From positions 62,001-126,000 of the IMG/VR virus record IMGVR_UViG_3300043410_001471: DNA of 64,000 bases. One strand, 5' to 3'. Position 1 is the stretch's first letter, and each line of letters opens with the position of its first letter. The notes under the pieces are model-generated. The model worked only from the letters and a program-made list of their open reading frames with translations, ran no database searches and was not told where the DNA came from. Below are positions 7,206 through 63,648 of the stretch, in pieces. Both the position numbers and the translations under genes were made by a program.

Positions 7206-7214
7206 ATATTTATA
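7206..7214 (+). promoter_or_regulatory. Putative late-promoter motif ATATTTATA
   Basis: Intergenic, 13 nt before the TTG at 7228. Confidence 0.55.
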
Positions 7215-16053: not shown

Positions 16054-16995
16054 GTGTTGAAAAGTACTGACAAAAATATCGTAGTATCTACGCTTTCTAA
16101 TGCGTTGGGTAGTTATTCCAATTTAAGGGGTAACGAATTAGCATTTTATTGTCCATTTTGTAATCACCACAAACAAAAACTACAAGTTAATACCGAAACT
16201 CAAAAATGGCATTGTTGGACTTGTAATAGTGGTGGTAAGAAATTGACTTCTTTATTAAAGAGATTAGATGTTGATAGAAAAACTATATCCATCATTAGAG
16301 AAATATATGGAGATTCCCATTATAATCCTCAAAACGAAGATGAAGGTACAAAAGTATTCATTCAGTTACCAAAAGAATTTATTTCATTGATAGATGAACC
16401 AAAAGGATTTAACCCAGAATACAAACACGCTATTCATTACTTAAATGAAAGAGGTATCACACAAAAAGATATTGTAAAATATAATATAGGTTATTGTAAA
16501 GATGGATTGTATGCCAGAAGGGTTATAATCCCATCATACACTTCAGATGGACAATTAAACTATTTTGTTTCTCGTTCATATTATGCTGAAGAGAAAATGA
16601 AATACAAAAACCCACCAATCAGTAAGAATGTAATATGTTTGGAATCTCAAGTTAATTGGAACGAACCAATTATTCTTTGTGAGGGTGTATTTGATGCGAT
16701 TACAATTAAAAGAAATGCTATTCCACTTTTAGGTAAGTTTCCATCCAAACAATTGGTTGAGAAAATCTTTATGAGTGGAGTTAGTGATATCATCATTTCA
16801 TTGGATAATGATGCAATCAATGAAGCATTAAAAGCAGCTGAATATTTTAGAAAAAATGGTATCCATGTAAAAATGATGTATCTTAAAGATAAAGATGCAG
16901 CTGATATGGGATACGAAAAGTTTTATGAAGAACTAAAGAAAACTAAAGAGTTTTCATCGGAAGAGTTATTATTAAATAAGATTATGAGTCTATGA
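16054..16995 (+). CDS. DNA primase (Zn-ribbon plus TOPRIM)
   Basis: CPFC..H...WHCWTC zinc finger; CEGVFDAI and SLDNDA TOPRIM motifs. The start is more likely GTG 16054 or TTG 16057 than the track's TTG 16036, which lies inside the promoter. Confidence 0.9.
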   Translation: MLKSTDKNIVVSTLSNALGSYSNLRGNELAFYCPFCNHHKQKLQVNTETQKWHCWTCNSGGKKLTSLLKRLDVDRKTISIIREIYGDSHYNPQNEDEGTKVFIQLPKEFISLIDEPKGFNPEYKHAIHYLNERGITQKDIVKYNIGYCKDGLYARRVIIPSYTSDGQLNYFVSRSYYAEEKMKYKNPPISKNVICLESQVNWNEPIILCEGVFDAITIKRNAIPLLGKFPSKQLVEKIFMSGVSDIIISLDNDAINEALKAAEYFRKNGIHVKMMYLKDKDAADMGYEKFYEELKKTKEFSSEELLLNKIMSL

Positions 16996-19900
16996 GTTTA
17001 AAAAAGATTTACCACATCGCAGACGTCCATATTCGTAATGTTAAAAGGCATACTGAATATAGGCAAGTATTTGAAAAGATGTTTGAGGAAATCCGTAAAA
17101 GAGGTACGGAAGATTCAATCATTTATTTAGCAGGAGATATTGCTCATGCTAAATTAGAACTTTCGCCTGAATTGGTTAGAGAGATTAGTTGGTTATTTAC
17201 GGAATGTTCTAAGCATTGTGAAACTATCCTTATTACGGGTAATCACGATTGTAATATGAACAATTCTGATAGATTGGATGTACTTACTCCAATTGTAGAA
17301 GCCTTAAATCTACCAAACTTTACATATTTGAGAGATACGCAAGTTTATTCCATTGGTGGAGTAGATTTCGGTGTATTCAGTATTTTTGATGATAAATCAA
17401 ATTGGCCTAAAGCAGAAACTTTAAGTGGAAACAAAAAGATTGCTTTATTTCACGGACCAGTTGATAACTCACAAACCGATATTGGATATGTAGTATCTTC
17501 TCGTCATTTCACAACCGAAATGTTTGATGGATATGATTTAGCCTTATTAGGTGATATCCATAAAAGACAAGAGATGATTTCTCCAAAAGGATGTAAAGTA
17601 GTTTATGCCGGTTCATTGGTTCAACAAAACTTTGGTGAAACTTTGGATAAGCACGGATTCCTTGTTTGGGATTTAGATACTTTAACTTATGAAGCAATTG
17701 ATATTCCAAATGATTATGGATATTACACTATGGATATTGATAATGGAAAAGTTCCTATTGTAAGTGATATGCCAAAGAAACCTCGTTTGAGAGTTCGCTT
17801 ATCTAATACCGATTCTGCTGATACTAAAAGAGTAATGGCTGAAATTAAGATGAGATATGGTGTTGAGGATTTCACAATTATCAGAACTGATTCATTGGCT
17901 AAATCAAAGACAGGTAATCGATTAAACAAATTAGATTTTGAAGATATTACGGATGTAAACTATCAGAACTCACTTATCAATGAATATGTTGAGAGAATGA
18001 TGCCTTTCGTAGCAAAGGAAGATTTAGATAAATTACAAACAATCAATAGAGATATAAATAGTAGAATTGTAAATGAAGATGTTCAAAGAAATATTCAATG
18101 GAAACCAATTAAGTTTGAGTTTTCAAATATGTTTAGTTATGGAGAGGATAACAAAATTGATTTCACAAAGTTAGGTGGATTAATGGGATTATTTGCACCA
18201 AACGCAACGGGTAAATCATCCTTATTCGATTCAATTTCATTTTGTTTATACGATAAGAGTAGTAGAGCATTCAAAGCAGCTAACATTCTAAACAATCGTA
18301 AATCAGAATTCGCTTGTCATTTACACTTTCAAATCGATGGGTTAGATTATCACATCGAAAGAACTGCTAAGACAATTAACAAAGGTAAGAATGTTAAAGT
18401 TGATGTACAATTCTGGAGACAAGATGGTGATGAGAAAACATCTTTAAATGGAACGGAGAGAAGGGATACAAATCAAATTATCGAACAATATGTTGGTAAA
18501 TATGAGGATTTCGTATTAACCGCTTTATCTTTACAAGGTAACAATGCACTATTCATTGATAAATCTCAATCAGAAAGAAAGGATTTATTAGCACAATTTA
18601 TGGGATTAAATGTATTCGATAAATTGTATGAAACTGCAACCGAAGATATCAAAGAGGTATCCGTTTTAATTAAGAATTTTAAGAAAACCGATTTCACTAG
18701 TGAATTGGCTGATAAAGCAATTGAATTAAAGGATAAGAAGGTTGAATTAAAAGATTTAGAAAAAGAGTTGGGTAGATTGAATGGTGATTCTACCGATTTG
18801 AGTAATAGAATCGTTGGATTGAGTGCAGAACTTACTCCAATGGATGGTAATTTGGATTTAGATAGTTTAACTCAACAACAAAATAAAATTGGTAGAGATA
18901 TTTTACATATTCTTGCAGAAAAGAAAGCAAAGGTAGAAACTATTGAAACATATACAACTACTATTAATGAATTATCTGCATCTATGGAAGATAAAAAGAA
19001 ATTTTATCTTTCAGAAACGGAATACATTGATATCGATAAAGCAAATGAATCATATGTTCAAGCGGAAAAGGATTATAATGTAGCAAACAATATTTACTAT
19101 GTTGCTAAAAAACAATTGGAAGCAGCAGAAGAAAAGATTAAACATTTGGATTCACATCAATACGACCCTAATTGTAAATTTTGTTGTGATAATGTATTCG
19201 TAAAGGATGCGATGAAAGCAAAAGAAGATTTGCAATCATTGGAAGTTAATGTGGATGAAGCTATGAATGATGTGAGTGGTTTTTCTAATATTATGGGTAT
19301 GTTTGAAGATGCCAAATCTCAATATGATACTATGTTGGATTTGAGAGGTAAGTATAGTAAGGCAATTGTTATCAAAGAGAAAGCAGAAGCTGAATTAGAA
19401 GGATTGGATACTAAAGAAGAATTATTAGAACACCAATTGGAAGTAGTTAAGGGTAACATTCAAAAATATCACGATAATGAAGCAACTATTAAAAAGAATG
19501 CACAAATTAACGAAGCGATTGTTGGATTAAAAAGAACTAAATCAGAAATTGAAGAAGAGATTAAGAAAGTTACAAAGGATATAGCCGGTGTAAATGGTTC
19601 TATTTCTTCCATATCTTCGTTTATAGAGGGGATAAAGAGTAGGATGGATGAAGTTAAGGATTTAGAAGAAAAAAACCGATTATACACCTATTATTTAGAT
19701 GCAGTTAAGAGAGATGGTATTCCTTATGAGTTGATTTCCAAAGCATTGCCAGTAATTGAAAATGAAATAAATAATATTCTTTCACAAGTTGTTGATTTTG
19801 GAATTGTAATGGAAGTGGATGGTAAATCAATTAATGCAAAAATCGTTTACGATGACCAAGAATGGCCATTGGAAATGTGTAGTGGTATGGAGAAATTTGT

Positions 19901-20150
19901 AAGTGGATTAGCAATCAGAGTTGCACTTATTAATGTATGTAATTTACCTCGTCCAAACTTCTTAGTAATTGATGAAGGATTTGGTACATTAGATAGCGAT
20001 AATTTATCATCTTTATTTATGATGATGCAGTATCTTAAAACTCAATTTGATTTCATTTGGATGATTTCTCACTTAGATGCAATGAGAGATATCGTAGATG
20101 GATTAATAGAAATTAAAAAAGAAAATGGATTTAGTAAGATTGACTTCTAA
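16992..20150 (+). CDS. Fused Mre11/SbcD (gp47-like) nuclease and Rad50/SbcC (gp46-like) ATPase
   Basis: Phosphoesterase motifs HIADVH, GDIAH, GNHD, FHG, GDIH, YAGS; Walker A APNATGKSS; Zn-hook CKFC; signature CSGMEKF; Walker B VIDEGFG; H-loop ISH. Confidence 0.93.
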   Translation: MSLKKIYHIADVHIRNVKRHTEYRQVFEKMFEEIRKRGTEDSIIYLAGDIAHAKLELSPELVREISWLFTECSKHCETILITGNHDCNMNNSDRLDVLTPIVEALNLPNFTYLRDTQVYSIGGVDFGVFSIFDDKSNWPKAETLSGNKKIALFHGPVDNSQTDIGYVVSSRHFTTEMFDGYDLALLGDIHKRQEMISPKGCKVVYAGSLVQQNFGETLDKHGFLVWDLDTLTYEAIDIPNDYGYYTMDIDNGKVPIVSDMPKKPRLRVRLSNTDSADTKRVMAEIKMRYGVEDFTIIRTDSLAKSKTGNRLNKLDFEDITDVNYQNSLINEYVERMMPFVAKEDLDKLQTINRDINSRIVNEDVQRNIQWKPIKFEFSNMFSYGEDNKIDFTKLGGLMGLFAPNATGKSSLFDSISFCLYDKSSRAFKAANILNNRKSEFACHLHFQIDGLDYHIERTAKTINKGKNVKVDVQFWRQDGDEKTSLNGTERRDTNQIIEQYVGKYEDFVLTALSLQGNNALFIDKSQSERKDLLAQFMGLNVFDKLYETATEDIKEVSVLIKNFKKTDFTSELADKAIELKDKKVELKDLEKELGRLNGDSTDLSNRIVGLSAELTPMDGNLDLDSLTQQQNKIGRDILHILAEKKAKVETIETYTTTINELSASMEDKKKFYLSETEYIDIDKANESYVQAEKDYNVANNIYYVAKKQLEAAEEKIKHLDSHQYDPNCKFCCDNVFVKDAMKAKEDLQSLEVNVDEAMNDVSGFSNIMGMFEDAKSQYDTMLDLRGKYSKAIVIKEKAEAELEGLDTKEELLEHQLEVVKGNIQKYHDNEATIKKNAQINEAIVGLKRTKSEIEEEIKKVTKDIAGVNGSISSISSFIEGIKSRMDEVKDLEEKNRLYTYYLDAVKRDGIPYELISKALPVIENEINNILSQVVDFGIVMEVDGKSINAKIVYDDQEWPLEMCSGMEKFVSGLAIRVALINVCNLPRPNFLVIDEGFGTLDSDNLSSLFMMMQYLKTQFDFIWMISHLDAMRDIVDGLIEIKKENGFSKIDF

Positions 20151-20359: not shown

Positions 20360-20397
20360 TATAAATATGATATATTTATTTTTTTAAGAATATTTAT
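20360..20397. promoter_or_regulatory. Divergent cluster of ATATTTAT motifs
   Basis: Minus-strand ATATTTATA at 20360-68 facing the RHH gene; plus-strand copies at 20372-79 and 20390-97 facing the tail fibre gene. Confidence 0.5.
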
Positions 20398-46502: not shown

Positions 46503-48110
46503 ATGCAACAACCATTTAAAATATACACATTAGAATCAAATGACCAAAAGGTTTTAAAGAAAGTTTTGGAATCGTCTGTTAATATCGAAAATATACGAGC
46601 TTCATCAGAAGGAGTTGGTAATAGAAGTTATGAACTTCCAACCGATATGGTGAAAACATTGGAAAATTGTGAATTAGAAAAAACCAATATCATATCAAAT
46701 GATTCTAAATTAAGTCAAATTTGGTATACATTAAATAAGCCTGAAAATAAGATAGAAGTTGAAAAAATGTTAGAAAAGCATTTTAAACAATTATATCCCA
46801 ATATAACTTATCCTTTGGAAATTTTATGGAATGTTACAATGTATACAGAGGGGTGTTTTATTGAAGAACATATAGATGGTAGAGATGCCGATAGAATGGC
46901 TGGATTTTTATTTTATTTAAATGAAAGTTATGATAGTGATAATGGTGGTCTATTAAGAGTTATAGACCCAAATACAAATGAAATAACAAATATTGTTCCG
47001 GAATTCGGACAAGCAATATGTATAGATTATATAAACAATGAGGTATCACACGAAGTGACACCTGTTAAACAAGGAAAAAGATTAGCAATTTGCGCATTCA
47101 TTCATAAAAGAAATCATATGGGAAAAAGTTACAAAATTTTAGTTACTGGAGCAAGTGGATTTATAGGTTCACAATTGGTTAAAAGTTTAAAAGAAAGAGG
47201 ATATTGGAATTTACGAACAACTTCATTTAGTAGAGACTTACCAAATACAATCAAAGATAAGGAATCAATTGAACATTTTAAAGGAGATTTACAAGATGCA
47301 AACTTTTGTAAGGAAGTTTCCGAAGGTGTAGATGTAGTATTTCATTGTGCAGCAAATACATCAAACGCATTAGATACAAAACAAAATCCTTTATTACATG
47401 TTACTCCAAATGTAGAAATGAATGTAAATTTGATGGAACAAAGTTGGAGAAATGGAGTTAAGAAGTTTATGTTTATTTCATCTAATACTGTATACCCAGA
47501 TATGAAGGACGCATTTTGTACCGAAGATATAAATATCCATGCAACTCCTACATTTCCAATATATGGGGCGGTTGGTAATATGAAAAGATATGGTGAATTA
47601 CTTTGTGAATATTTTTCAAAACAAATCCATAATCCAATGCAATGTGTAATTATTAGACCATCAAATGCATTTGGACCAAATGATAAATTTGATTTCGAAA
47701 AGTGTCATGTTACACCTGCAAACATTCGTAAAGTTGCAGATGGTTTAAATCCAATTCCGGTATGGGGTGATGGTAGTGAGGTAAGAGATTTACTTCATGT
47801 TGAAGATATGGCGGATGGTATGATATTTTTAGCAGAAATGGTAGATAAATATTCTATTTACAATGTTTGTTATGGAGAAGGATTTAGTGTAAATGAAGTA
47901 TTAGGATGGATTAAAGAAGCTGATAATAATGATAATCCTGTCGAATATGTAAATAATAAAGCTCCAATGATTCCTGTTAGATTAATGTCATCTAAAAAAA
48001 TAAATGAGTTGGGGTGGAAACCAAAAAGAGATTTAAAGCAAGCTCTTAAAGAAACATTGGAATGGTATAAAGAACATAAACACTTATATAATCCAAACTC
48101 AAAACCATAA
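46503..48110 (+). CDS. In-frame fusion of a 2OG-Fe(II) oxygenase and a GDP-fucose-synthase-like SDR
   Basis: N-half EHIDG, FLFYLN, GGLL, HEV, R; C-half (from Met at 47118) TGASGFIG, FISSNTVY, VGNMK in place of YxxxK, RPSNAFG, WGDGSEVRD. Confidence 0.85.
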   Translation: MQQPFKIYTLESNDQKVLKKVLESSVNIENIRASSEGVGNRSYELPTDMVKTLENCELEKTNIISNDSKLSQIWYTLNKPENKIEVEKMLEKHFKQLYPNITYPLEILWNVTMYTEGCFIEEHIDGRDADRMAGFLFYLNESYDSDNGGLLRVIDPNTNEITNIVPEFGQAICIDYINNEVSHEVTPVKQGKRLAICAFIHKRNHMGKSYKILVTGASGFIGSQLVKSLKERGYWNLRTTSFSRDLPNTIKDKESIEHFKGDLQDANFCKEVSEGVDVVFHCAANTSNALDTKQNPLLHVTPNVEMNVNLMEQSWRNGVKKFMFISSNTVYPDMKDAFCTEDINIHATPTFPIYGAVGNMKRYGELLCEYFSKQIHNPMQCVIIRPSNAFGPNDKFDFEKCHVTPANIRKVADGLNPIPVWGDGSEVRDLLHVEDMADGMIFLAEMVDKYSIYNVCYGEGFSVNEVLGWIKEADNNDNPVEYVNNKAPMIPVRLMSSKKINELGWKPKRDLKQALKETLEWYKEHKHLYNPNSKP

Positions 48111-51556: not shown

Positions 51557-51565
51557 ATATTTATA
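51557..51565 (+). promoter_or_regulatory. Putative late-promoter motif ATATTTATA
   Basis: Intergenic, 3 nt before ATG 51569. Confidence 0.5.
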
Positions 51566-51568
51566 TGT

Positions 51569-54500
51569 ATGAATTTAAGCGAAGTAGATAAACCAGAAGT
51601 TAAAAAGACCATAGTAGTATATTCAGGTCGTTTTCAACCATTTCACAAAGGGCATTATGTTTCTTATTTAAAACTTTGTAGTAAGTTTGGTAAGAATAAT
51701 GTCTATATTGGTACATCTAATGATACTTCCGGTCCAAAATCTCCATTTAACTTTAACGAAAAAGTTAAAATAATGAACACTATGTTCGGTATTCCATCGG
51801 ACAAGATAGTTCAGGTGAAAAATCCATATGCTCCAAAAGAAATTTTACAACAATTTGATGGTAAAACAACTCAATACATTGCAGCAGTTGGAGAAAAGGA
51901 TGCAAATAGATTACAAGGTAAATATTTTAAGCCATATAAAGGTAAAGCTGGATATGGTTACGATGAAATTGGTTATGTTTATCCCGTTCCTGCTGAAACT
52001 AACGCAATTAGTGGAACTGATGTTCGAAGTTGGTTAGGTAGTGATAGTAAAGATAAAGAAAAAGGATTTTTAAAAGCATATCCAAAATTTGATAAAGAAA
52101 TTTTTAAAATGATAACAGGTAAATTAAACGAATCGGTAAATACAAATCCATCATATACGATGAGGCCAGAACCACATCCAACTAGACATGAAACGGAACA
52201 CCCAACCGATGAACCTGATTGGCATAAAAAGGATGAACCATATGACCCTATTTCGGAATTAATAGGTAAAACTATGATGGAAGAAATGTTTCAAGACTTT
52301 TTAAGAGAATATTTGGATGAAGAATCCGAAGCTCAGAAAATGGGATTGATACACTTAGGTGGTGGGTATTATGGTAAGGAGCAAGGTAAACCAGCTACTC
52401 ATAAATCGGAAGATGGTAAAATTAGAGCATTAACACCCGCTGAAGTAGCTGCGGAAAAGCAAAAACAAATGGCTAAAGGTCCTTCGGATGCACCTGCAAA
52501 CGAACCTAAACCATCTCAACCAGGTCAACCTGTTAATAAAGGAGCAACTGCTCAAGGTAAAGTTGATAAAGCAAAGGAAGAACCAACTAATAAAAAAGTA
52601 GGTGGAGAACAGCCTGGTCAACAAGCGCCTCCGCCTGAACAAAAGTTAAGTGGAGCAGAATTGAAATCATCTGCCGAAATGTCTCCAGATGAAAAGAAAC
52701 AAGCCGAAGTAAAAGAAAAATTACATCATGCAATGGCTGATTTATCAGATGATGATAAAAAAGTAGTAGATGATGTTAATAACCCGGATTCAGAAATGAG
52801 AAAGGGTTGGTATGAAAAATTAAATGATTGGACTGGAGATAAACTACATAAAGTTGGTAAAGCAGTTGGGCATGTAATTGCACATAAAGTAGACCAATAT
52901 AAAGAATTTGGTAAGGGTATGTACTCATTAGCAACTTCAGGTAAATTGGGTACAATTACAGATGAAGAAACTGGTAAAAAAGTACATTGGTCTGATTATA
53001 CACAGGGAGGTTCATCCAAAGAAGGATGGGGAGATAAAATGAAAGATGTGCCTGTTTATAAAAAAGATAGTCATGGACATCCTATACATGATGAAGAAGG
53101 TAATCCGGTTCAAGATAAAGATTGGAGGGGTAGACCTAAAACACAAAAAGAACCTGTATTTAGAGAAGATTTATCACCAAGAGAATTGGCATTAGCAAAG
53201 AAATCTTGGTATGAAAGAAATGAACAAATAAAAGGTTTAAAAGGAACTGCTATGGATGCCGCTCTTATTGCTGGTAGTATGATGACAGCAGGGGCTGCAA
53301 CTGGGGCATTAGCTGCAAAGGGTATCGGTACTACTGCAAATGTTGCATCGTATGCGGGGCAAACATTGGGACATGCAATTCAACATGGAGCTGTTCACTC
53401 ATTCACATCGGGGGCGAGTTATTTTGGAATTCACTTAGGAAAGGATATGGCTAAACACGTTGCAATTGAAGCAACGGGATTAGGTGCGATGGGAACAACT
53501 ACTGCTGGAACTGTTTTAAGTGTTGCAACGGGTGGTATTTTGGAAGGAATTGGTAATGATTCAAATCAGCCAAATCCACAAGATATGATGATGAACCTAA
53601 TAAAGAAAATAGGTGAAAGAATGCAAACATTTAAAATGAGTGATGAACAAATGTTGGCATCTATTGAATCATATAAAAAAAATAAACCAGAATCCGATTT
53701 AGCAAACGCTGCAAAGGATTTAATGAAAGAAGATTTATCAGATTCTAAAAAAGCAAATATACAACACTTTGTAGAATTTGCAACTAAGAGATTAAAACTA
53801 CAAGAAACTCCAAAAGTAACTTTGGTAGGTGGAAAAGAATATGGTAATGTAAAATCTTCATTAGGTGGATACAGCCCAGAAGATAAAACAATATATGTTG
53901 CAACTGAAGGTAGATTGACAGCAGATATCCTAAGAACTCTTGCGCATGAGATGGTTCATAGAAAGCAAGATGAGATGGGATACATCAAAGATTCGGTACA
54001 AGATGGTGCGGATGGTTCTCCAATAGAAAACCAAGCACATTCAATTGCTGGAATCTTAATGAGAGAATATGGTAGAATCAACAAACAAATTTACAACGAA
54101 GATGTTAATGTAGATGTTGATAAAGGTGATGAAGTTTTAATGGGTAAATTTAAAAACAAAAAAGTTACCGTTAAAGATATTGGAACTGATGACCATGGGA
54201 TGCCAACAATCAATGGTAAGCAAGCAACTACATTCAGAATTCCACGAGGTGAAAGTGTAAACGAAGTTGGTTCAAATGATTGGAGATTCAAAGCAATTAT
54301 GAAATTGTGGGATAAAGCATCTACATTTGGTAGAAAGAAAATTGCAGCAGCAGTTTGTAAAGACCCAAATGCGGATAGAAATGATGTTGCAAGAGAATTG
54401 AGAAGTTTTGGATATAGAGATATAACATCGGTTGGTGACCAATTAGGATTAGACGAAAAAAAAAATCTTAAAGAAAAATTATCACACTCCAATTTAGATA

Positions 54501-56257
54501 GTGTAGAGAAATATGCGGATAGAGAATTATCTCCTGCTGATATTGAATTTAGTAATCATTTCTTTGATAGATTAAATGACCCAAGAAATGGTAAAGAAAT
54601 TTCAGAACCAGAATTAACTGGGTTTTTCAAAAGATTAGCAAGACACAAAAAAGAATTTTTAGATTTTTTAGATAAGTACAATCAAATCGTAGTTAAAGAT
54701 ACGAGAAGTGATATCAATATCCCATTTGTAAAAATGGCAAATAAAGTTATCGCTAAGACTGTAATGAGAAAGGGCGAATTTCAAACATCATCTCATACAA
54801 TCGTAAATGAAGCACAGGCCGTTAGTGGTGGCAAGGTTCATAAATTCATTACTGGTAAAAATTTAGGATTCAAAGGTAAAAAGTATTCTGAAATTGAATT
54901 TGAAACATTAGGAATCGATAATAGAAATCAGACTGTTAGATTGAAAATTATAGCACCAAAAGAAATTGGTGGTAATGAAATGAGTTTAGATTTCAGAACA
55001 ATTAGAAGAGGTCCTTTTTTCAAAACCGATACTCATTCTCACTCAATACATGAAGGATTGATATTAGAAGGTGGTGCATACGGGCACATGTCACATCCAT
55101 TTGATGATATGGATTTAACTTTTGGTGATTTGAAAAAGATTATCAAAGGAGCATTGACGGGTAATTTAGAATTGACAAGAGAGAAAACTGATGGGCAAGC
55201 ATTGGCAATCAGTTGGAAGAATGGTAGATTAATTGCAGCAAGAAATAAATCACATTTAGCTAATGGTGGAGCCGGTGCAATGGGTATCGAAGATGTAGCA
55301 AATAAGTTTGGTGGTAGAGGTGGTTTAACCGATGCATACAATTTCGCAATGAAGGATTTGACAGCAGCAATCCAATCATTATCAGAAGCACAAAGAAAAA
55401 AGATATTTAACGAAGGACAATGTTTTATGAATTTGGAAGTAATATGGCCAACTTCAGTAAATGTTATTCCTTACGGACAGGCTTTATTAGTATTCCACAA
55501 TACAACTTGTTATGATGAAAAGGGTGTAGCAGTTGGAGCAAATCAGGGAGCAGCAACAATGTTAGCAGGAATGATTAAGCAAGTAAACGCTGATGTTCAA
55601 TCAAAGTATACAATACAAGGTCCACCTGTAACAGAACTACCTAAAAATGAGGAGTTAAGTTCGAAGCAAACAAAATACCTAACTCAATTACAAAAGATTC
55701 AATTTCAATTCCAATTATCCGATAAGGATGGTGTTTCTGAATATCATCAAGCATGGTGGGAAGATTTTGTGAACAAAGGTGGAGTTAAATTACAAAAATT
55801 AGAAAAGGAAGCATTAGTAAGAAGATGGGCATTTGGCGATAAATCATTTCGTTTAAACACTATCGCTGATAAAGATGCTCAAAAATGGGCAATCGATAAT
55901 GATAAAGTAAATGTAGCTAAACAACAAAAAGAAAATGTTAGACAATTTGAAGAAATATTTTTGGGGGTTGGTGCAGACGTTCTCTCATTTATGGGTTCAG
56001 TTTTAACAGCAAACCCAGATGCAGCAGTTCGTAATATGAAAGATAGATTAAAATCAACTGCGGAGAAAGTTAGAGGAAGTGGTGACCCATCTAAAATAGC
56101 TAAATTGAAAATGGAATTAAGTAGATTGGCTAGTATTGGTGGTAAAGACAAGATAGTTCCAAACGAAGGTATTGTATTTGTTTATAAAGGAAACACTTAC
56201 AAACTTACAGGTACATTCGCACCATTAAATCAAATTTTAGGTATATTTTACGAATAA
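51569..56257 (+). CDS. Multidomain protein: HxGH nucleotidyltransferase, low-complexity/hydrophobic region, HExxH zincin, small domains, and C-terminal ligase-like KxDG domain (DUF6267-like)
   Basis: GRFQPFHKGH (51644-55); RTLAHEMVH (53945-59); GGAYGHMSHPFD, EKTDG (55181-95), ARNK, NLEVI, EGIVF, YKLTG at the C-terminus. Confidence 0.75.
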   Translation: MNLSEVDKPEVKKTIVVYSGRFQPFHKGHYVSYLKLCSKFGKNNVYIGTSNDTSGPKSPFNFNEKVKIMNTMFGIPSDKIVQVKNPYAPKEILQQFDGKTTQYIAAVGEKDANRLQGKYFKPYKGKAGYGYDEIGYVYPVPAETNAISGTDVRSWLGSDSKDKEKGFLKAYPKFDKEIFKMITGKLNESVNTNPSYTMRPEPHPTRHETEHPTDEPDWHKKDEPYDPISELIGKTMMEEMFQDFLREYLDEESEAQKMGLIHLGGGYYGKEQGKPATHKSEDGKIRALTPAEVAAEKQKQMAKGPSDAPANEPKPSQPGQPVNKGATAQGKVDKAKEEPTNKKVGGEQPGQQAPPPEQKLSGAELKSSAEMSPDEKKQAEVKEKLHHAMADLSDDDKKVVDDVNNPDSEMRKGWYEKLNDWTGDKLHKVGKAVGHVIAHKVDQYKEFGKGMYSLATSGKLGTITDEETGKKVHWSDYTQGGSSKEGWGDKMKDVPVYKKDSHGHPIHDEEGNPVQDKDWRGRPKTQKEPVFREDLSPRELALAKKSWYERNEQIKGLKGTAMDAALIAGSMMTAGAATGALAAKGIGTTANVASYAGQTLGHAIQHGAVHSFTSGASYFGIHLGKDMAKHVAIEATGLGAMGTTTAGTVLSVATGGILEGIGNDSNQPNPQDMMMNLIKKIGERMQTFKMSDEQMLASIESYKKNKPESDLANAAKDLMKEDLSDSKKANIQHFVEFATKRLKLQETPKVTLVGGKEYGNVKSSLGGYSPEDKTIYVATEGRLTADILRTLAHEMVHRKQDEMGYIKDSVQDGADGSPIENQAHSIAGILMREYGRINKQIYNEDVNVDVDKGDEVLMGKFKNKKVTVKDIGTDDHGMPTINGKQATTFRIPRGESVNEVGSNDWRFKAIMKLWDKASTFGRKKIAAAVCKDPNADRNDVARELRSFGYRDITSVGDQLGLDEKKNLKEKLSHSNLDSVEKYADRELSPADIEFSNHFFDRLNDPRNGKEISEPELTGFFKRLARHKKEFLDFLDKYNQIVVKDTRSDINIPFVKMANKVIAKTVMRKGEFQTSSHTIVNEAQAVSGGKVHKFITGKNLGFKGKKYSEIEFETLGIDNRNQTVRLKIIAPKEIGGNEMSLDFRTIRRGPFFKTDTHSHSIHEGLILEGGAYGHMSHPFDDMDLTFGDLKKIIKGALTGNLELTREKTDGQALAISWKNGRLIAARNKSHLANGGAGAMGIEDVANKFGGRGGLTDAYNFAMKDLTAAIQSLSEAQRKKIFNEGQCFMNLEVIWPTSVNVIPYGQALLVFHNTTCYDEKGVAVGANQGAATMLAGMIKQVNADVQSKYTIQGPPVTELPKNEELSSKQTKYLTQLQKIQFQFQLSDKDGVSEYHQAWWEDFVNKGGVKLQKLEKEALVRRWAFGDKSFRLNTIADKDAQKWAIDNDKVNVAKQQKENVRQFEEIFLGVGADVLSFMGSVLTANPDAAVRNMKDRLKSTAEKVRGSGDPSKIAKLKMELSRLASIGGKDKIVPNEGIVFVYKGNTYKLTGTFAPLNQILGIFYE

Positions 56258-57624: not shown

Positions 57625-59235
57625 ATGGCAGTTCAAGGGAAACCAACGAAAAGTCTAAAAGAAATAATTGCTGAAGAATATCGTAAATGTGCGGCTGACC
57701 CCATTTACTTTATGAAGAAGTATTGTGTTATTCAACATCCGGTGAGAGGGAAAATTCCCTTTCACCTTTATCCTTTCCAGGAAGATTGTTTAACGGATTT
57801 TAAAGACCATCGGTTTAACATCATCCTTAAATCTCGTCAATTGGGTTTATCAACTCTTTCGGCAGGATTTATTCTTTGGAAAATGATTTTCAATCAGGAC
57901 TTTAATGCATTGGTTATCGCAACAAAAGTTACGGTAGCAAAAAACCTTGTAGAGAAAGTAAGGGTTATGCACGATTTACTTCCTATATGGTTGAGAGATG
58001 GTGGAACTGCGGCAGCAGAAGATAACAAACTCTCACTTAAATTAAAAAATGGTTCGCAAGTAAAAGCAATCGCATCTTCTCCAGATGCAGGTCGTTCAGA
58101 AGCCTTATCACTATTAGTTGTGGATGAGGCAGCTTTCATTAGAGATATTGATGAGATTTGGTTATCAGCGCAATCTACCTTATCAACGGGTGGTAGTGCT
58201 ATTGTATTATCTACACCAAATGGTATTGGTAACTGGTTTCATAAAATGTGGGTTGAAGGTGAAAGTGGAACAAATGGTTTTAATTGTATAAATCTCCATT
58301 GGACTGTACACCCTGAAAGAAATCAGGCTTGGAGAGATGAACAAACTCGTATCTTAGGAGTTAAGGGAGCAGCACAAGAATGTGATTGTGACTTTATCGG
58401 TTCAGGAGATACTGTATTTGAACCAGCTCTACTGACTTGGTATAAAGATACCTATGTAATGGAGCCGGTTGAGAAAAGAGGATTTGATAACAATCTATGG
58501 GTATGGGAATATCCAAATTATAATAAACAATATATTGTTGTAGCGGACGTTGCCCGTGGAGATGGTTCTGACTACTCTACGGCTCATATTATTGATATAG
58601 AAGATTGTGTTCAAGTTGCAGAATATAGAGGTAAAGTTGATACAAAGGATTTTGGAAACTTTTTAACCTCATTGGCAACTGAATATAATACGGCACTTTT
58701 GATTATTGAAAATGCAAATGTGGGATGGGCTTGTATTCAGCAAGTAATCGATAGAAATTATAGTAATTTATTCTATATGAGTAATGATTTGAAATATATC
58801 GATGTTGAAAGACAAATGTCAAACAAATATTATAGAGATGAAAGACAAATGGTTGCTGGATTCTCTACTACATCTAAAACTCGTCCTTTAATCATATCAG
58901 CATTGGATACTTATATGAATGATAAAGATATCATTATTCGTTCTCAAAGAACAATTGATGAGATGTTTACATTTATCTGGAGTGGAGGTAGAGCTGAAGC
59001 GATGAAAGGGTATAATGATGACTTGATTATGGCATTGGGTATTGGACTTTGGGTTCGTAATACCGCACTTCGTTTAAGACAAGAAGGTATAGACTTAACA
59101 AAAAGTATGTTGAATTCAACTACTATCCAAAATAACACCGGAGTATATGCTACAAACTGGCAGCAAGGTAGAAATCCGTATGAAATGGAGGTAGGAAAAG
59201 GTCAAACCGAAAATTTAACTTGGTTACTTCAATAA
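57625..59235 (+). CDS. terL: Terminase large subunit (T4 gp17-like)
   Basis: CAADPIYF...Y..IQHP, LKSRQLGLST, VVDEAAFI, STPNG, VADVARGDGSDYS, IIENANVG, DDLIMAL. Confidence 0.95.
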   Translation: MAVQGKPTKSLKEIIAEEYRKCAADPIYFMKKYCVIQHPVRGKIPFHLYPFQEDCLTDFKDHRFNIILKSRQLGLSTLSAGFILWKMIFNQDFNALVIATKVTVAKNLVEKVRVMHDLLPIWLRDGGTAAAEDNKLSLKLKNGSQVKAIASSPDAGRSEALSLLVVDEAAFIRDIDEIWLSAQSTLSTGGSAIVLSTPNGIGNWFHKMWVEGESGTNGFNCINLHWTVHPERNQAWRDEQTRILGVKGAAQECDCDFIGSGDTVFEPALLTWYKDTYVMEPVEKRGFDNNLWVWEYPNYNKQYIVVADVARGDGSDYSTAHIIDIEDCVQVAEYRGKVDTKDFGNFLTSLATEYNTALLIIENANVGWACIQQVIDRNYSNLFYMSNDLKYIDVERQMSNKYYRDERQMVAGFSTTSKTRPLIISALDTYMNDKDIIIRSQRTIDEMFTFIWSGGRAEAMKGYNDDLIMALGIGLWVRNTALRLRQEGIDLTKSMLNSTTIQNNTGVYATNWQQGRNPYEMEVGKGQTENLTWLLQ

Positions 59236-59242
59236 ATTTTAT

Positions 59243-59251
59243 ATATTTATA
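59243..59251 (+). promoter_or_regulatory. Putative late-promoter motif ATATTTATA
   Basis: Intergenic, 25 nt before ATG 59277. Confidence 0.55.
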
Positions 59252-59276
59252 TGTTGAAACTATTAAAAATACAAAA

Positions 59277-59780
59277 ATGAGATTATTAGACTTAATTCCT
59301 TTGAAAGAAATGGAAAATCCTTGTTGGAAAGGATATGAAATGGTAGGAACTAAAACAAAAGATGGTAAAGAAGTACCAAATTGTGTACCCGTAAGTGAAG
59401 ATATCGATTCGGATGATGATGTAAACTATGGTTTAGTTGAACCAGAAGAATACGATGTTGAAGATGAGGATATGGAAGATTTTATCTCATTTATGCGAGG
59501 ATATGATAAATCTTTAAATGAAGGATGTCAATGTTTAAGAGAAGCTGAATATCAAGGTAGACAAGTTCAGTTGGGTAAACCAATGGCTGGGGATGTTAAA
59601 AAATTCAAAGTGTATGTTAAAAACCCAGCTGGTAATGTAGTTAAGGTAAATTTTGGACAGAAGGGAGTTAAAATTAAAAAGAACAATCCAGATAGAAGAA
59701 GAAGTTTCAGAGCAAGACATAATTGTGACCAACCCGGCCCAAGACATAAAGCTAGATACTGGTCTTGTAGAAAGTGGTAA
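59277..59780 (+). CDS. Small head-region protein with CWKGY...VPNCVP and FRARHNC...RYWSC..W modules
   Basis: Two short Cys/Trp modules I recognise from large-phage head regions. ATG 59277 follows the motif; the track's 59220 start overlaps terL. Confidence 0.7.
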   Translation: MRLLDLIPLKEMENPCWKGYEMVGTKTKDGKEVPNCVPVSEDIDSDDDVNYGLVEPEEYDVEDEDMEDFISFMRGYDKSLNEGCQCLREAEYQGRQVQLGKPMAGDVKKFKVYVKNPAGNVVKVNFGQKGVKIKKNNPDRRRSFRARHNCDQPGPRHKARYWSCRKW

Positions 59781-59835: not shown

Positions 59836-61578
59836 ATGGCAGATAAATCAATATTCGGTAGGTTACAAAAATTATTTTCAACGAATACTATAATTCGTAA
59901 AACGCAGCAAGGTGTTAAAGTAATTGATACAGATGAGTATCAAAATATGACAACTAATCTTGTAGACCGTTATATGAAATTAAAGATTAGTAATTATGGA
60001 GTTGGTTCATTGGAATCATCTTTGGCATATCAACAAGTTAGAATTGATTTGTTCAGAGATTATGATTCAATGGATATGGACCCGATTTTAGCATCTGCAT
60101 TGGATATTTACGCTGATGAATGTACACCTACAAACGAACATGGTAATGTTTTGAAAATACATCACGAAGATGATAATATCAAACAAATATTAGAAAATTT
60201 ATTCTACGATATTCTTAATGTGGAATTTAATTTATGGCCTTGGACTAGAAATTTAGTTAAATATGGTGATTTCTTTTTACAATTAGAAATTTCACCTGAA
60301 TTGGGTATTATTAATGTAATGCCAATGTCTACTTATGAAATGAGTAGAGTTGAGGGATTTGACCCTGAAAATCCTCAAAGAGTAAAATTTGTATATTCAC
60401 CATATCAGAATCCATATACAACTGGATTACAATCTACAAAAACTGAATATGAAAACTATGAAATTGCACATTTTCGTTTAAATGGTGATGCAAACTTCTT
60501 ACCTTATGGAAAATCTATGATTGAAGGTGGTAGAAGAGTTTGGAAGCAATTACAATTGATGGAAGATGCTATGTTAATTCATAGAGTGATGAGAGCTCCC
60601 GAAAAAAGAATCTTTAAAGTGGATGTGGGTAATATTCCACCAAACGAAGTAGATAACTACATGCAAAAGATTATCAACGCATCGAAGAAAGTTCCATTCG
60701 TTGATGAAAGAACAGGTGAATATAATTTAAAATACAATATTCAAAACTTAATAGAAGATTATTATATGCCAGTTCGTGGTAGCGATAATGGTACTTCTAT
60801 TGATACATTAAAAGGTTTAGAATATAATATGATTGATGACCTTAACTACTTAAAAGGTAAGTTAATGGCAGCATTGAAAATTCCAAAAGCATATTTAGGA
60901 TTTGAAGAAGATACCAATGGTAAAGCAACATTGGCATCGATGGATATCCGTTTCGCAAAGACAATCGAAAGAATTCAAAAAGTATTAATTTCAGAATTAA
61001 CAAAGATAGGAATCATTCACTTATATGCGCAAGGTATAGATGATGATAGATTGACTAACTTTACATTGGAACTTACAATCCCATCTAAAATCTACGAACA
61101 AGAGCAAGTTGAATTATATACTTCTAAAGTAGCATTGATTCAACAAATGCAACAAACAAAGATGTTCTCTAAAGAATGGATGTATGATTCAGTAATGAAG
61201 ATGGCTAAAGATGAGCAAGATGAATTGACATTGCAAGTATTGGAAGATACTAAGCAAATGTTTAGATTGACATCAATTGAAACGCAAGGTGTAGACCCTG
61301 CTAAGGAAACGGGAGTAGAAGGCGGCCCAACCAATGTAGAAGAAGAATTAAATAAATTAAAATTGGAATTGGATGGCGATGTTGGTAGACCAAAAGACCC
61401 GGTTAGATATGGTAAAGATGACCATCCGGAAGGAAGAGACCCGTTGGGAATAAAGACTCTAAAGCAAAGAGAAGGTTCTGTGGCTTATAAACCGAGAAAA
61501 AATTCATATTTGGAGATATTTAAGGATATGAATGGTAATAAAAAGACTATTTTGACAGAAGATTTAACAAAAGAGTAA
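59836..61578 (+). CDS. gp20: Portal protein (T4 gp20-like)
   Basis: YDSMD.DPI...ALDIYADE, MEDAMLIHRV.RAPEKRIFK.DVGNIPP, EDYYMPVRG, IDTL.G, LMAALKIPKAYLG. Confidence 0.95.
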   Translation: MADKSIFGRLQKLFSTNTIIRKTQQGVKVIDTDEYQNMTTNLVDRYMKLKISNYGVGSLESSLAYQQVRIDLFRDYDSMDMDPILASALDIYADECTPTNEHGNVLKIHHEDDNIKQILENLFYDILNVEFNLWPWTRNLVKYGDFFLQLEISPELGIINVMPMSTYEMSRVEGFDPENPQRVKFVYSPYQNPYTTGLQSTKTEYENYEIAHFRLNGDANFLPYGKSMIEGGRRVWKQLQLMEDAMLIHRVMRAPEKRIFKVDVGNIPPNEVDNYMQKIINASKKVPFVDERTGEYNLKYNIQNLIEDYYMPVRGSDNGTSIDTLKGLEYNMIDDLNYLKGKLMAALKIPKAYLGFEEDTNGKATLASMDIRFAKTIERIQKVLISELTKIGIIHLYAQGIDDDRLTNFTLELTIPSKIYEQEQVELYTSKVALIQQMQQTKMFSKEWMYDSVMKMAKDEQDELTLQVLEDTKQMFRLTSIETQGVDPAKETGVEGGPTNVEEELNKLKLELDGDVGRPKDPVRYGKDDHPEGRDPLGIKTLKQREGSVAYKPRKNSYLEIFKDMNGNKKTILTEDLTKE

Positions 61579-61625: not shown

Positions 61626-62498
61626 ATGAAAAAAATAAAACATTCAAAGTTTAAAAATACGGGATTTATATTCGAATTATTAGTAAGACAAATTACATCT
61701 GAAATAATGTCTGCTAACAAATCAATAGCAGAAGGTATTTTAAAAGAACATTTCAATTCGAAAAAAGAATTGTCAAAAGAATTAAAGTTATATCAGTATT
61801 TGATAAATGAGAAATACAATTCAGAAGCAAAAGCTGAGAAATTTATTGATACTATCTTAGAAGCTCGTAAAAGATTAGATGAGAAAAAACTTACAAAAGA
61901 AAAGTATAATCTTATCAAACAAATTAAAGAAACTTACGGATTGGATGAATTTATTAAATCTCCAATTTCGAATTATAAAACATTAGCATCTATTTATAAA
62001 ATATTTGAAGTAGTAACAACCGAAGAACAATACGAACCAACTGATATCGTAAATTCTCGTTTTACTATTGCAGAAAGTATTATAAATTCTTCTATTCAAA
62101 ATAAAGAAGCAAAAGTTAAAGATGCAGTTTTAGAAGAATATAGAAAACAAGATGAAGATTTAAGAGCTATTTCTTACAAAATATTAGTAGAGAATTTTAA
62201 TTCAAAATATAAAAATTTATCTAAAGAACAAAAGGGATTATTGAAAGAATATATCAATAATATCAATAATACAGGTAAATTAAATGAATATGTTTCAAAC
62301 GAAGTAACTGATTTAGTAAATTCTTTAAAAGAAATCGGTTCTAAAATTTCAGATAAAGTTACTAAGATTAAATTGGCTGAAACTATATCTAACATACGAA
62401 AAATAAAATCAGTTAAGAAAGTTAGAGAGCAACACTTATCAGCGATGATGATGAGTTATGAATTATTAAAGGAATTAAAAGATAGTTTAAATAAATAA
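61626..62498 (+). CDS. Hypothetical head-assembly-region protein
   Basis: KHSKFKNTGFIFELLVRQI N-terminus, all-helical; immediately after portal, where prohead core genes lie in T4. Confidence 0.6.
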   Translation: MKKIKHSKFKNTGFIFELLVRQITSEIMSANKSIAEGILKEHFNSKKELSKELKLYQYLINEKYNSEAKAEKFIDTILEARKRLDEKKLTKEKYNLIKQIKETYGLDEFIKSPISNYKTLASIYKIFEVVTTEEQYEPTDIVNSRFTIAESIINSSIQNKEAKVKDAVLEEYRKQDEDLRAISYKILVENFNSKYKNLSKEQKGLLKEYINNINNTGKLNEYVSNEVTDLVNSLKEIGSKISDKVTKIKLAETISNIRKIKSVKKVREQHLSAMMMSYELLKELKDSLNK

Positions 62499-62759: not shown

Positions 62760-63302
62760 ATGCCAGCAGTATCAAAAGCACAACAACGATTTATGGGCAT
62801 GGTTCATGCAGCTGATAAAGGAGAAACTCCTGCATCACCTGAAGTAGCAAAAGTAGCAGCTTCTATGGATGATAAAGATGCTAAAGATTTTGCATCAACA
62901 TCTCATAAAGGATTGCCTGATAAAATCAAAGAATTTATAGTAAGAGAAGCTAGAGGTGTTAAATCAATCCAAAATGATTATATGAAAACAGTTAATGCTA
63001 TTGCACAAACTTTGGAATCATATAAGCAGGCTAAAGGAACTTCAAATGAAAAGAAATTTGTTGAAAGATTGAAACAACTACAAACTTTAAAAAAGAAATT
63101 TGCTAAAGAATTGGATGATAAGGTTAGTGGATTGTATAAAGATGTTGAGTTAAAAGCCGATGTGGATGAAATGAACACAAGTGGTGCAGCTGGAGAATAC
63201 AATACTCCATTTGCATTTGGTAAAAAAGAAGATGAGAAATCCAAAGGTAAAAGACAAGCAGATTTGACTGGATATTCGGTAGTTAAGGAAATTAAAAAAT
63301 AA
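62760..63302 (+). CDS. Head-region protein with DUF3008-like N-terminus
   Basis: MPAVSKAQQRFMG.V.A...FAST.HKGLP.K; C-terminal EMN.S...GEY.TPFAF module. Confidence 0.55.
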   Translation: MPAVSKAQQRFMGMVHAADKGETPASPEVAKVAASMDDKDAKDFASTSHKGLPDKIKEFIVREARGVKSIQNDYMKTVNAIAQTLESYKQAKGTSNEKKFVERLKQLQTLKKKFAKELDDKVSGLYKDVELKADVDEMNTSGAAGEYNTPFAFGKKEDEKSKGKRQADLTGYSVVKEIKK

Positions 63303-63333: not shown

Positions 63334-63648
63334 ATGAAATTACATCAATTAAGAGAATTTGTTAAGCAAGTTGTAAAAGAAGAGCAAGATTATCAGCAAT
63401 TATTCAAACATATGTTGGATAAGACTGGTAAAGATATCAACTCTATGAGTGATGAAGATAAAAAGAAATTCTTCAGTGCCGTAGATACTGCTTACAAAGC
63501 AAAATCGGAGGGTAGATTAAGAGGGTATAACGAAGCTGAATTAACTGCTGGACAAAAGAAAATTGATGTGGATAATGATGGTGAGATTGAAGGTTCGGAT
63601 TTAGCAGCATTGAGAGCCAAAAATGAAGGGGCTCAAAAAAAAAAGTAA
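63334..63648 (+). CDS. Head-region protein with EF-hand/dockerin-like DxDxDG loop; ends on a slippery site
   Basis: QKKIDVDNDGEIEGSDLAAL; ends CAA AAA AAA AAG TAA. Confidence 0.7.
   Translation: MKLHQLREFVKQVVKEEQDYQQLFKHMLDKTGKDINSMSDEDKKKFFSAVDTAYKAKSEGRLRGYNEAELTAGQKKIDVDNDGEIEGSDLAALRAKNEGAQKKK

Follow-up and report, generated by a model that had tools for sequence, protein, structure and literature searches.

The internal proteins of phage T4 (IPI, IPII, IPIII and Alt) belong to a T4-like head module with a prohead protease of the S77 type; each gene carries one leader, which ends in hydrophobic-x-Glu, and the enzyme or effector cargo varies between relatives. The T4 capsid-targeting sequence has 10 residues, of which 8 and 10 direct processing and Asp at 10 blocks it; the protease gp21 itself has LIE at residue 9, and Alt, with a propeptide of 7 aa, loses only short terminal propeptides (PMC9026906). 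The polyvalent proteins described by Iyer, Burroughs, Anand, de Souza and Aravind (2017) are large chains of unrelated enzymatic domains, zincins included, from phages with portal-terminase packaging and from conjugative elements; they are predicted to travel with the DNA and to act early in infection, and the embedded zincin was proposed as their processor (PMC5512222). In the giant phages phiKZ, 201phi2-1 and SPN3US, a gp21-related protease cuts packaged ejection or inner-body proteins after Glu, some of them multiply, and 13 of the 14 cuts mapped in SPN3US remove N-terminal propeptides, most of which do not stay in the head (PMC10052503). Here we analyse a 64,000-nucleotide (nt) stretch of DNA from an uncultured phage (IMG/VR record IMGVR_UViG_3300043410_001471, positions 62,001 to 126,000; hereafter the window), which comes from a 245,436-bp freshwater metagenome contig and encodes a modular protein of 1562 aa, a 172-kDa chain, in the open reading frame (ORF) at 51569-56257 (+).

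Like the T4 internal proteins, the 1562-aa protein comes with a T4-like head module and an S77 protease, has a putative leader ending in hydrophobic-x-Glu (Φ-x-E, where Glu is P1 and the hydrophobic residue P3), carries cargo that varies between relatives and is predicted to be cleaved after Glu, with Asp never at P1. It differs from them in joining many modules in one chain with a site at each joint, in its 5-residue leader, in the frequent Asn at P2 and in a hydrophobic residue that sometimes stands at P4, and none of its modules is homologous to the internal proteins or Alt. With the polyvalent proteins it shares the large chain of unrelated enzymatic domains, including a zincin with HExxH and a downstream Glu, and the portal-terminase setting, the genes for the large terminase and the portal lying downstream. 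In contrast to the processor proposed there, the evidence here points to the capsid maturation protease, and the NMNAT-like nucleotidyltransferase, the RNA-ligase-like domain and the RegB-like module fall outside the repertoire catalogued in that study, in which 2H domains were never seen associated with RNA ligases (PMC5512222). The giant-phage motif is (A/S/G)-x-Glu with a small P3, whereas P3 is hydrophobic here, and for SPN3US no cuts between functional enzyme modules are described (PMC10052503). The proposed design is a combination of two known ideas, the T4 internal proteins and the polyvalent proteins. Our analysis suggests, with a probability that we put at roughly 60%, that the 1562-aa protein is a head-packaged effector polyprotein that would be cut by the S77 prohead protease at the joints between its modules. 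Its features are as follows (a slash after Glu marks a predicted cut; residues are numbered along the protein).

51569..56257, + strand: whole ORF, modular polyprotein of 1562 aa, with >1,900 homologs of 1300-2100 aa
51569..51583, + strand: leader MNLSE/ (residues 1-5), putative short propeptide or targeting peptide; Glu5 is kept in 96% of 120 relatives
51584..52132, + strand: predicted NMNAT/cytidylyltransferase-like nucleotidyltransferase (residues 6-188; PF01467, PHROG 395), ending KLNE188/
52133..52321, + strand: His/Pro/acidic linker (residues 189-251); YDPISE230/ and YLDE251/ are conserved islands in it
52322..53203, + strand: Lys/Glu/Pro/Gly/Gln-rich low-complexity region (residues 252-545), with no family match
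53204..53545, + strand: Gly/Ala/Thr-rich, moderately hydrophobic segment (residues 546-659), ending GILE659/
53546..53731, + strand: helical spacer (residues 660-721), ending LMKE721/; predicted local distance difference test (pLDDT) scores of 42-63, below 50 in the linker 706-720
53732..54100, + strand: zincin metallopeptidase (residues 722-844) with HEMVH at 793-797 and Glu820, ending IYNE844/
54101..54265, + strand: small beta module (residues 845-899; AlphaFold), ending SVNE899/
54266..54475, + strand: small helical module (residues 900-969; pLDDT 79-95), with ends at GLDE963/ and NLKE969/
54476..54811, + strand: module of ~112 aa (residues 970-1081) in which H, R, D, R and N are invariant, ending IVNE1081/
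54812..55069, + strand: small module or linker with little predicted order (residues 1082-1167); KYSE1108/ lies within it and LILE1167/GG marks its end
55070..56257, + strand: predicted RNA-ligase-like covalent nucleotidyltransferase domain (residues 1168-1562 and the stop codon)

Placement of the hydrophobic-x-Glu sites

The first-pass annotation of this sequence had proposed a packaged polyprotein with nine Glu sites at its domain boundaries. The 1562-aa ORF is present, and so are all nine sites: NLSE5, KLNE188 (ending at nt 52132), YLDE251, LMKE721 (53731), IYNE844 (54100), SVNE899 (54265), NLKE969 (54475), IVNE1081 (54811) and LILE1167/GG (55069). The pattern given for them, (L/I/V/Y)-x-E, describes the listed sites in general but not LMKE, which has Met at P3 and Leu at P4. 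The annotated domains (a nucleotidyltransferase, an HExxH zinc peptidase, small domains and a ligase-like domain) hold, and the boundaries drawn at the sites agree with AlphaFold linkers and with homology breakpoints, both of which are independent of the motif. Because the test for over-representation across the whole protein was negative, boundary-specific tests were used instead; the signal is the placement of the sites, rather than their number.

In the AlphaFold model of residues 660-1170, folded blocks span residues 721-839 (pLDDT 85-94), 851-887, 900-963 (79-95) and about 997-1066, with a hairpin at 1109-1130, and linkers with pLDDT <50 span 706-720, 840-850, 888-899, 964-996, 1067-1108 and 1130-1170. 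LMKE721, SVNE899, KYSE1108 and LILE1167 stand at the C-terminal edge of a linker, directly ahead of the next fold; IYNE844, NLKE969 and IVNE1081 lie within linkers, and GLDE963 abuts the linker 964-996. The model of the C-terminal domain is disordered through residue 1169 and ordered from about 1170, right behind LILE/GG. Breakpoints in BLAST alignments of 119 relatives cluster on the query at 969, 844, 895-897, 1081, 1108 and 1157-1168, the commonest being residue 969 (dozens of cases); 1128 is a further breakpoint position.

Among the 120 closest members of the family, 141 of 617 block-end peaks (23%) fall exactly on the Glu of Φ-x-E, versus 2.7% of random positions; typical joints read SSAFKES[LIV]NE/ and are followed by quite different modules. 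The same test was applied to 151 divergent relatives, each the representative of a cluster at 50% identity: block ends coincide with such a Glu in 22.0% of cases versus 2.2% at shifted positions, and Glu is the terminal block residue in 27.8% versus a background of 6.2%, counts that shared descent inflates even in this set. At these block ends Φ-x-D is not enriched (1.5% versus 2.7% at shifted positions), and neither are Q, N, S, T, A or G at P1. The first-pass annotation would have been undermined by sites no commoner at boundaries than elsewhere; what we find is a ten-fold, Glu-specific enrichment at block ends.

Conservation of single joints can also be followed. K[LIF]xE follows the nucleotidyltransferase in most of 96 aligned divergent relatives, whatever module is next, and beyond it the sequences diverge. 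Glu230 and Glu251, in a region of 40-45% identity, are kept in 87-98% of relatives, GILE is kept in 97% within a region of 25% identity, and Glu721 is invariant. Of 135 relatives, 108 have Φ-x-E/GG ahead of the ligase-like domain. Copies of the 970-1081 module from 28 contexts (alignment A3) have a near-invariant Glu at both ends and flanks that vary, and the standalone protein of phage Melnitz terminates at the position of the module's end Glu. Metagenome contigs of related strains carry the joints 54090>54468, 54239>55118 and 55032>54098 (mapping is noisy), which represent module loss or permutation, with some ends near IYNE844 and NLKE969.

The N-termini of the family end their leaders in the same way. 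Φ-x-E is found in the first 22 residues of 86% of 137 distinct N-termini, versus 24-55% in later stretches of 22 residues; the control value, for unrelated ORFs of the window, is 17/39 (44%). In the wider family, [LIVMF]xE ends at residues 4-16 in 76%. The usual leader is 10-16 aa long, MNELSKFLVE/SILLE/, and is shortened to MNLSE/ in the subgroup of the query; MNLSE... and MNELSKFLVESILLE... are both among the family's leaders.

The first-pass annotation had also raised the question of whether the domains occur as separate or shuffled genes in relatives. They do occur as separate genes, most of them with Φ-x-E leaders. On an 89-kb ENA scaffold (L011, 7710-11260), a nucleotidyltransferase, a C92 peptidase and a ligase-like protein are adjacent separate genes; both the nucleotidyltransferase and the ligase-like protein, as well as a 128-aa protein encoded nearby, have the leader xIGPYxIxE/, which the peptidase lacks and which would be a lineage-specific capsid-targeting peptide. 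Standalone ligase-like proteins have leaders of 10-20 aa that end before GG, such as MRNIGPYLIE/GGAAGH, and one of them starts MGGAYGH. The standalone zincin homolog of Synechococcus phage B23, gp332, has the leader MNYKQFLRE/S. Microcystis phage Mel-JY01 encodes a minimal fusion of 639 aa, consisting of the nucleotidyltransferase and the ligase-like domain, at the same place upstream of the terminase. In Flavobacterium phage immuto, gp080 (leader MKKSQLRQIIKE/A) and gp079 lie just upstream of the terminase. The latter, which has the leader MKKLIRIVE/A and many xLNE sites, may be a second, unrelated protease-segmented head protein, in this case in a cultured phage; it is annotated as an 841-aa hypothetical protein (L004 10007-12532), and its sites include KELNE, GKLNE, SVNE, SLNE and ALNE. 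The 'cytitidyltransferase' of Synechococcus phage S-CAM7 was also considered and was dropped, as it is a remote match to the N-terminal domain (E=4e-3) and lies outside the head region.

Prohead protease, head proteins and gene context

The T4-type protease that the first-pass annotation had assumed is encoded on the same contig. A Peptidase_S77 gene (PF03420, the gp21 family) lies at L005 10730-11320, ~1.1 kb beyond the end of the window, and is followed by a gene for a scaffold-like protein and then one for a Gp23 capsid protein; Portal_T4 is in the same head module. Several of these canonical head proteins carry the motif and the leaders. The protease has 9 [LI]xE versus 3.7 expected and the N-terminus MSKGLLIE/, the scaffold-like protein has 13 versus 7.6 expected and the N-terminus MANSKLLKE/, and the capsid protein has GLLE/ and QLLDE/A at its N-terminus, an arrangement that is the same in immuto. 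Three further head-region proteins of the window and a motif upstream of the polyprotein gene are listed here.

51558..51565, + strand: TATTTATA, 4 nt before the start codon; candidate late or structural-gene control element
59277..59780, + strand: small protein of the head region; leader MRLLDLIPLKE/, with LVE, LNE and LRE further in; [LI]xE 4 versus 1.4, p=0.03
61626..62498, + strand: 290-aa protein after the portal; 17 [LI]xE versus 6.5 expected, a count that no shuffle reaches
63334..63648, + strand: 104-aa protein with leader MKLHQLRE/, like the T4 capsid-targeting sequence

The 290-aa protein has no family match and looks like a putative core or scaffold protein, which would be degraded by the prohead protease. 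Another small head-region leader reads MIRLKDLLSE/, and these leaders, like those of the protease and the scaffold-like protein, resemble the 10-residue T4 capsid-targeting sequence. The sites that had been pointed out in neighbouring ORFs are found as well: PLKE, SLNE and CLRE in the ORF at 59277, IVRE at 62760, and VVKE and GYNE at 63334. The program-made ORF 59220-59780 opens at TTG, and its true start is likely to be the ATG at 59277.

The motif TATTTATA connects the polyprotein gene with structural genes. It occurs 17 times in 73.6 kb, and 10 of these occurrences fall in short gaps upstream of genes, all of which belong to the baseplate/tail-fibre or the head/neck regions. The gap copies on the + strand are at 7207, 12227, 14163, 15366, 51558, 59244, 61597 and 63306, and at L005 15546/15552 and 16508. 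Copies lie 7-37 nt upstream of the genes at 7228, 12256 and 14177 (baseplate/tail-fibre), of those at 59277, 61626 and 63334, and of two beyond the window (head/neck); none is found upstream of genes in the non-structural block 15609-51426. This distribution suggests that the gene at 51569 is co-regulated with structural genes, and TATTTATA may be the lineage's late promoter or another control element. The spacing to the start codon varies, from 26 nt at 59277 and 21 nt at 63334 to 4-7 nt at 51569 and 14177, and the 4 nt at 51569 leave no room for a leader of ordinary length. The octamer TATAAATA, the canonical late promoter of T4, was rejected as a candidate, since it is not enriched (22 copies versus 22.6 expected) and no copy precedes the 51569 gene on the + strand; its sole intergenic copy on that strand, at 20360-20367, precedes the tail-fibre gene at 20412 by 45 nt.

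Proposed processing and alternative explanations

In the pathway that we propose, the polyprotein would be made with the late or structural genes and would enter the scaffolding core of the prohead. The gp21-type serine protease (Peptidase_S77) would cut it after the Glu of hydrophobic-x-Glu in the flexible connectors between modules, at residues 5, 188, 230/251, 659, 721, 844, 899, 963/969, 1081, 1108 and 1167. The freed pieces, namely an NMNAT-like nucleotidyltransferase, the low-complexity region, a hydrophobic piece rich in Gly and Ala, the HExxH zincin, three to four small modules and an RNA-ligase-like enzyme, would remain in the capsid with the DNA and reach the host at infection. Those parts of the first-pass reading that lend themselves to computation all came out in its favour. 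What the sequences show is the modular build, the junction motif across a very large family, a gene for the cognate protease, and head substrates of the canonical kind with matching sites and leaders; packaging, cleavage, the choice of sites, delivery and the biochemical part played by each module are inferences. Cytidyltransferases have repeatedly been found in the virion proteomes of T4-like cyanophages (PMC10665884), although their homology to the 1562-aa protein is not established.

Several observations weigh against this pathway. Over the whole protein there is no enrichment of sites, with 25 [LIVY]xE versus 22.1±4.1 in shuffles and 14 [LI]xE versus 12.6, and Φ-x-E also occurs inside folded domains, at residues 746, 833, 1273, 1317, 1356 and 1391. 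The shared descent of the relatives, mentioned above, lowers the weight of the junction counts. The leader has only 5 residues, versus 10 aa in T4 and 7 aa in Alt. Some junctions have their hydrophobic residue at P4, not P3, so that the exact specificity would differ from T4's. Before GG, 27 of the 135 relatives have M, C, A, S or N in place of Glu (never D), which implies either that this joint is not always cleaved or that the LLxEGG stretch has a structural role. Finally, the literature was searched for a virion proteome of Mel-JY01 or immuto, and none turned up. As to the lineages without Glu before GG, the sequences P0132, P0176, P0181, P0203 and others have LLLM, LLLC, LLQC or LLQA there and still have N-terminal leaders ending in Glu; in such lineages either the joint is left uncut or the P1 preference of the protease differs.

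The T4 protein Alt offers a different model, in which the chain is packaged largely intact, cutting is confined to the short leader and possibly one or two exposed sites, and a single multifunctional chain is injected; the other junction Glu residues would then be relics of leader ends from once-separate genes. The limited trimming of Alt itself (PMC9026906), the 27 relatives without Glu at the ligase junction and the unenriched total site count all speak for such a scheme. However, the junction Glu is near-invariant over deep divergence while the flanks are free to vary, and Asp never substitutes for it, a pattern that points to P1 being still under selection at many junctions and not to a relic; we therefore regard the Alt-like scheme as unlikely. 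Another possibility is that the protein is never packaged and works in the cytoplasm as a multi-enzyme, for instance in nucleotide/NAD or RNA-repair chemistry. Φ-x-E would then be a generic helix-end or linker feature of a proteome rich in Glu, Lys, Ile, Leu and Asn, and the proximity to head genes a coincidence. The genome is indeed AT-rich, Φ-x-E is common near the start of unrelated ORFs of the window (the 17/39 given above), and upstream neighbours such as a nucleotide-sugar epimerase-like gene at 46503 are metabolic, not structural. Linker composition can hardly explain a ten-fold, Glu-specific enrichment at block ends without Asp, nor does a cytoplasmic role fit with N-terminal leaders that are common to unrelated proteins or with an upstream TATTTATA that is common to structural genes, and we consider it distinctly unlikely.

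The embedded zincin might itself process the chain, before packaging or after injection, in which case the junction motif would be the zincin's own site. A role of this kind was proposed by Iyer et al. 2017 (PMC5512222), and the zincin here has invariant catalytic residues and a confident fold. Yet it is present in only 18 of 150 divergent relatives, and the other 132 keep the junction motif and the leaders, so that the motif is independent of the zincin; moreover, the same motif occurs in the scaffold, core, capsid and protease proteins, which are the classical gp21 substrates, and standalone zincin homologs have a leader of their own. On these indirect grounds, processing by the zincin appears highly improbable.

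If the polyprotein is cut by the prohead protease as proposed, the protease that matures the capsid would have a second task, freeing a set of proteins from one precursor chain. A single late gene would in this way supply a mixture of proteins that act early and arrive with the DNA, ahead of any phage gene expression. The NMNAT-like transferase and the divergent ligase-like domain would then be likely to have early counter-defence or takeover functions. It is possible, and we suggest it tentatively, that prohead-protease sites are universal connectors for assembling, swapping and duplicating injected effector modules in T4-like aquatic phages. Such connectors would amount to a widespread, undescribed 'cassette' system with >1,800 clusters at 50% identity, anchored by the NMNAT-like nucleotidyltransferase and the new RNA-ligase-like domain, and would explain the reshuffling of cargo between phages. 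They would also provide a sequence rule for the injected proteins of uncultured T4-like phages, namely a leader plus hydrophobic-x-Glu at the joints. The size of the unannotated family and the simplicity of the junction rule give the system its interest.

Modules of the polyprotein and the phage that encodes it

Residues 6-188 are a predicted NMNAT-like nucleotidyltransferase. The PF01467 match covers residues 17-153 with 23.2 bits against a cutoff of 21, and the motifs HxGH (as FHKGH) and ISGTDVR (of the ISxTxxR type) are readable. NCBIfam NMNAT equivalog models match weakly, far below threshold, and a search of the Protein Data Bank (PDB) with the whole protein returned weak NMNAT matches only. 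Within the low-complexity region that follows, the Pro/Gln/Lys/Gly-rich residues 300-370 (52466-52678) are 80-95% conserved in 120 relatives, above their flanks, which is unusual for a mere spacer. The block 52001-54000 has a G+C content of 36.7%, versus 26-30% nearby. The segment 546-659 had been called hydrophobic in the first-pass annotation; it is moderately so, but as a membrane helix it is borderline (Kyte-Doolittle 19-residue maximum 1.42, residues 564-583).

The zincin residues H134, E135, H138 and E161 (alignment A1) are invariant in 70 sequences, and the domain has pLDDT 85-94; the best Foldseek matches are weak and are to zincins of the IrrE/PprI type. The beta module 845-899 is found at other positions and in other copy numbers in relatives. 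The 970-1081 module matches phrog_23027 and phrog_14518, and separate genes for it are found in Flavobacterium phage immuto, in Melnitz and in phiM12-type phages. It is possibly an RNase of the RegB kind, a reading that we offer as a lead only: its match to RegB (PF10715/REGB_T4) has 19.5 bits against a cutoff of 27, below the gathering score, and REGB_T4 is matched by 10 of the 28 module copies, all sub-threshold, with a best E=7e-4. A PDB profile search with this module gave no match. In the ESM Atlas, residues 540-721 and 970-1081 matched nothing but unnamed viral clusters, with scores under the reliable level. Among the additional modules of ten longer relatives, Pfam recognised one ROS/MucR zinc finger and otherwise gave sub-threshold noise.

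Residues 1168-1562 look like a divergent RNA-ligase-like domain with an invariant KxDG; the AlphaFold model of this part has pLDDT 90.8 and a predicted template modelling score (pTM) of 0.86. Like T4 RNA ligases 1 and 2 and other covalent nucleotidyltransferases, the domain has the KxDG lysine, an EG...K spaced like motifs IV and V, and structural matches; unlike them, it has a helical insertion of ~220 aa, no family match at the sequence level and weak structural E-values. The KTDG motif (EKTDG) contains Lys1206, the motif I lysine, and the insertion stands before EGIVF...YKLTG, between putative motifs IIIa and IV. K57, D59, G60, E141, E384, G385 and K396 are invariant in alignment A2, of which E141, E384-G385 and K396 can be matched to motifs III, IV and V through their spacing alone. 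The top 50 Foldseek matches in the PDB are mostly RNA/DNA ligases or capping enzymes, T4 Rnl1 being the first (E=0.016), and these matches to the ligase fold are weak, with E 0.016 or worse and TM ~0.2-0.25. No sequence match to a curated ligase family was found in Pfam, NCBIfam or a PDB profile search, where matches were spurious. In a viral structure library, the close relatives are 'cytidyltransferase-like' fusions of uncultured phages, with a remoter one in cyanophage S-PM2. The family of this domain comprises 1,848 clusters at 50% identity, in which it is nearly always C-terminal, and the polyprotein family has no curated annotation beyond 'cytidyltransferase-like'.

The genes of the window are all on one strand, with a G+C content of about 30%. 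The large terminase gene (57625-59235) is two genes downstream of the 1562-aa ORF, and a T4-type portal gene (59836-61578, PF07230) is also downstream of it. By portal comparison the nearest deposited phages are Microcystis phage Mel-JY01, Flavobacterium phage immuto and Rhodothermus phage RM378, which places the phage in a distant T4-like lineage; it is a predicted distant T4-like jumbo phage. Megablast of the gene, and of the surrounding 24 kb, gave no match among deposited phages, and the RNA runs searched for the sequence do not contain it. Elsewhere in the window, a single ORF of 1052 aa at 16992-20150 combines an SbcD-like N-terminal and an SbcC-like C-terminal part, nuclease subunits that are usually encoded by separate genes.

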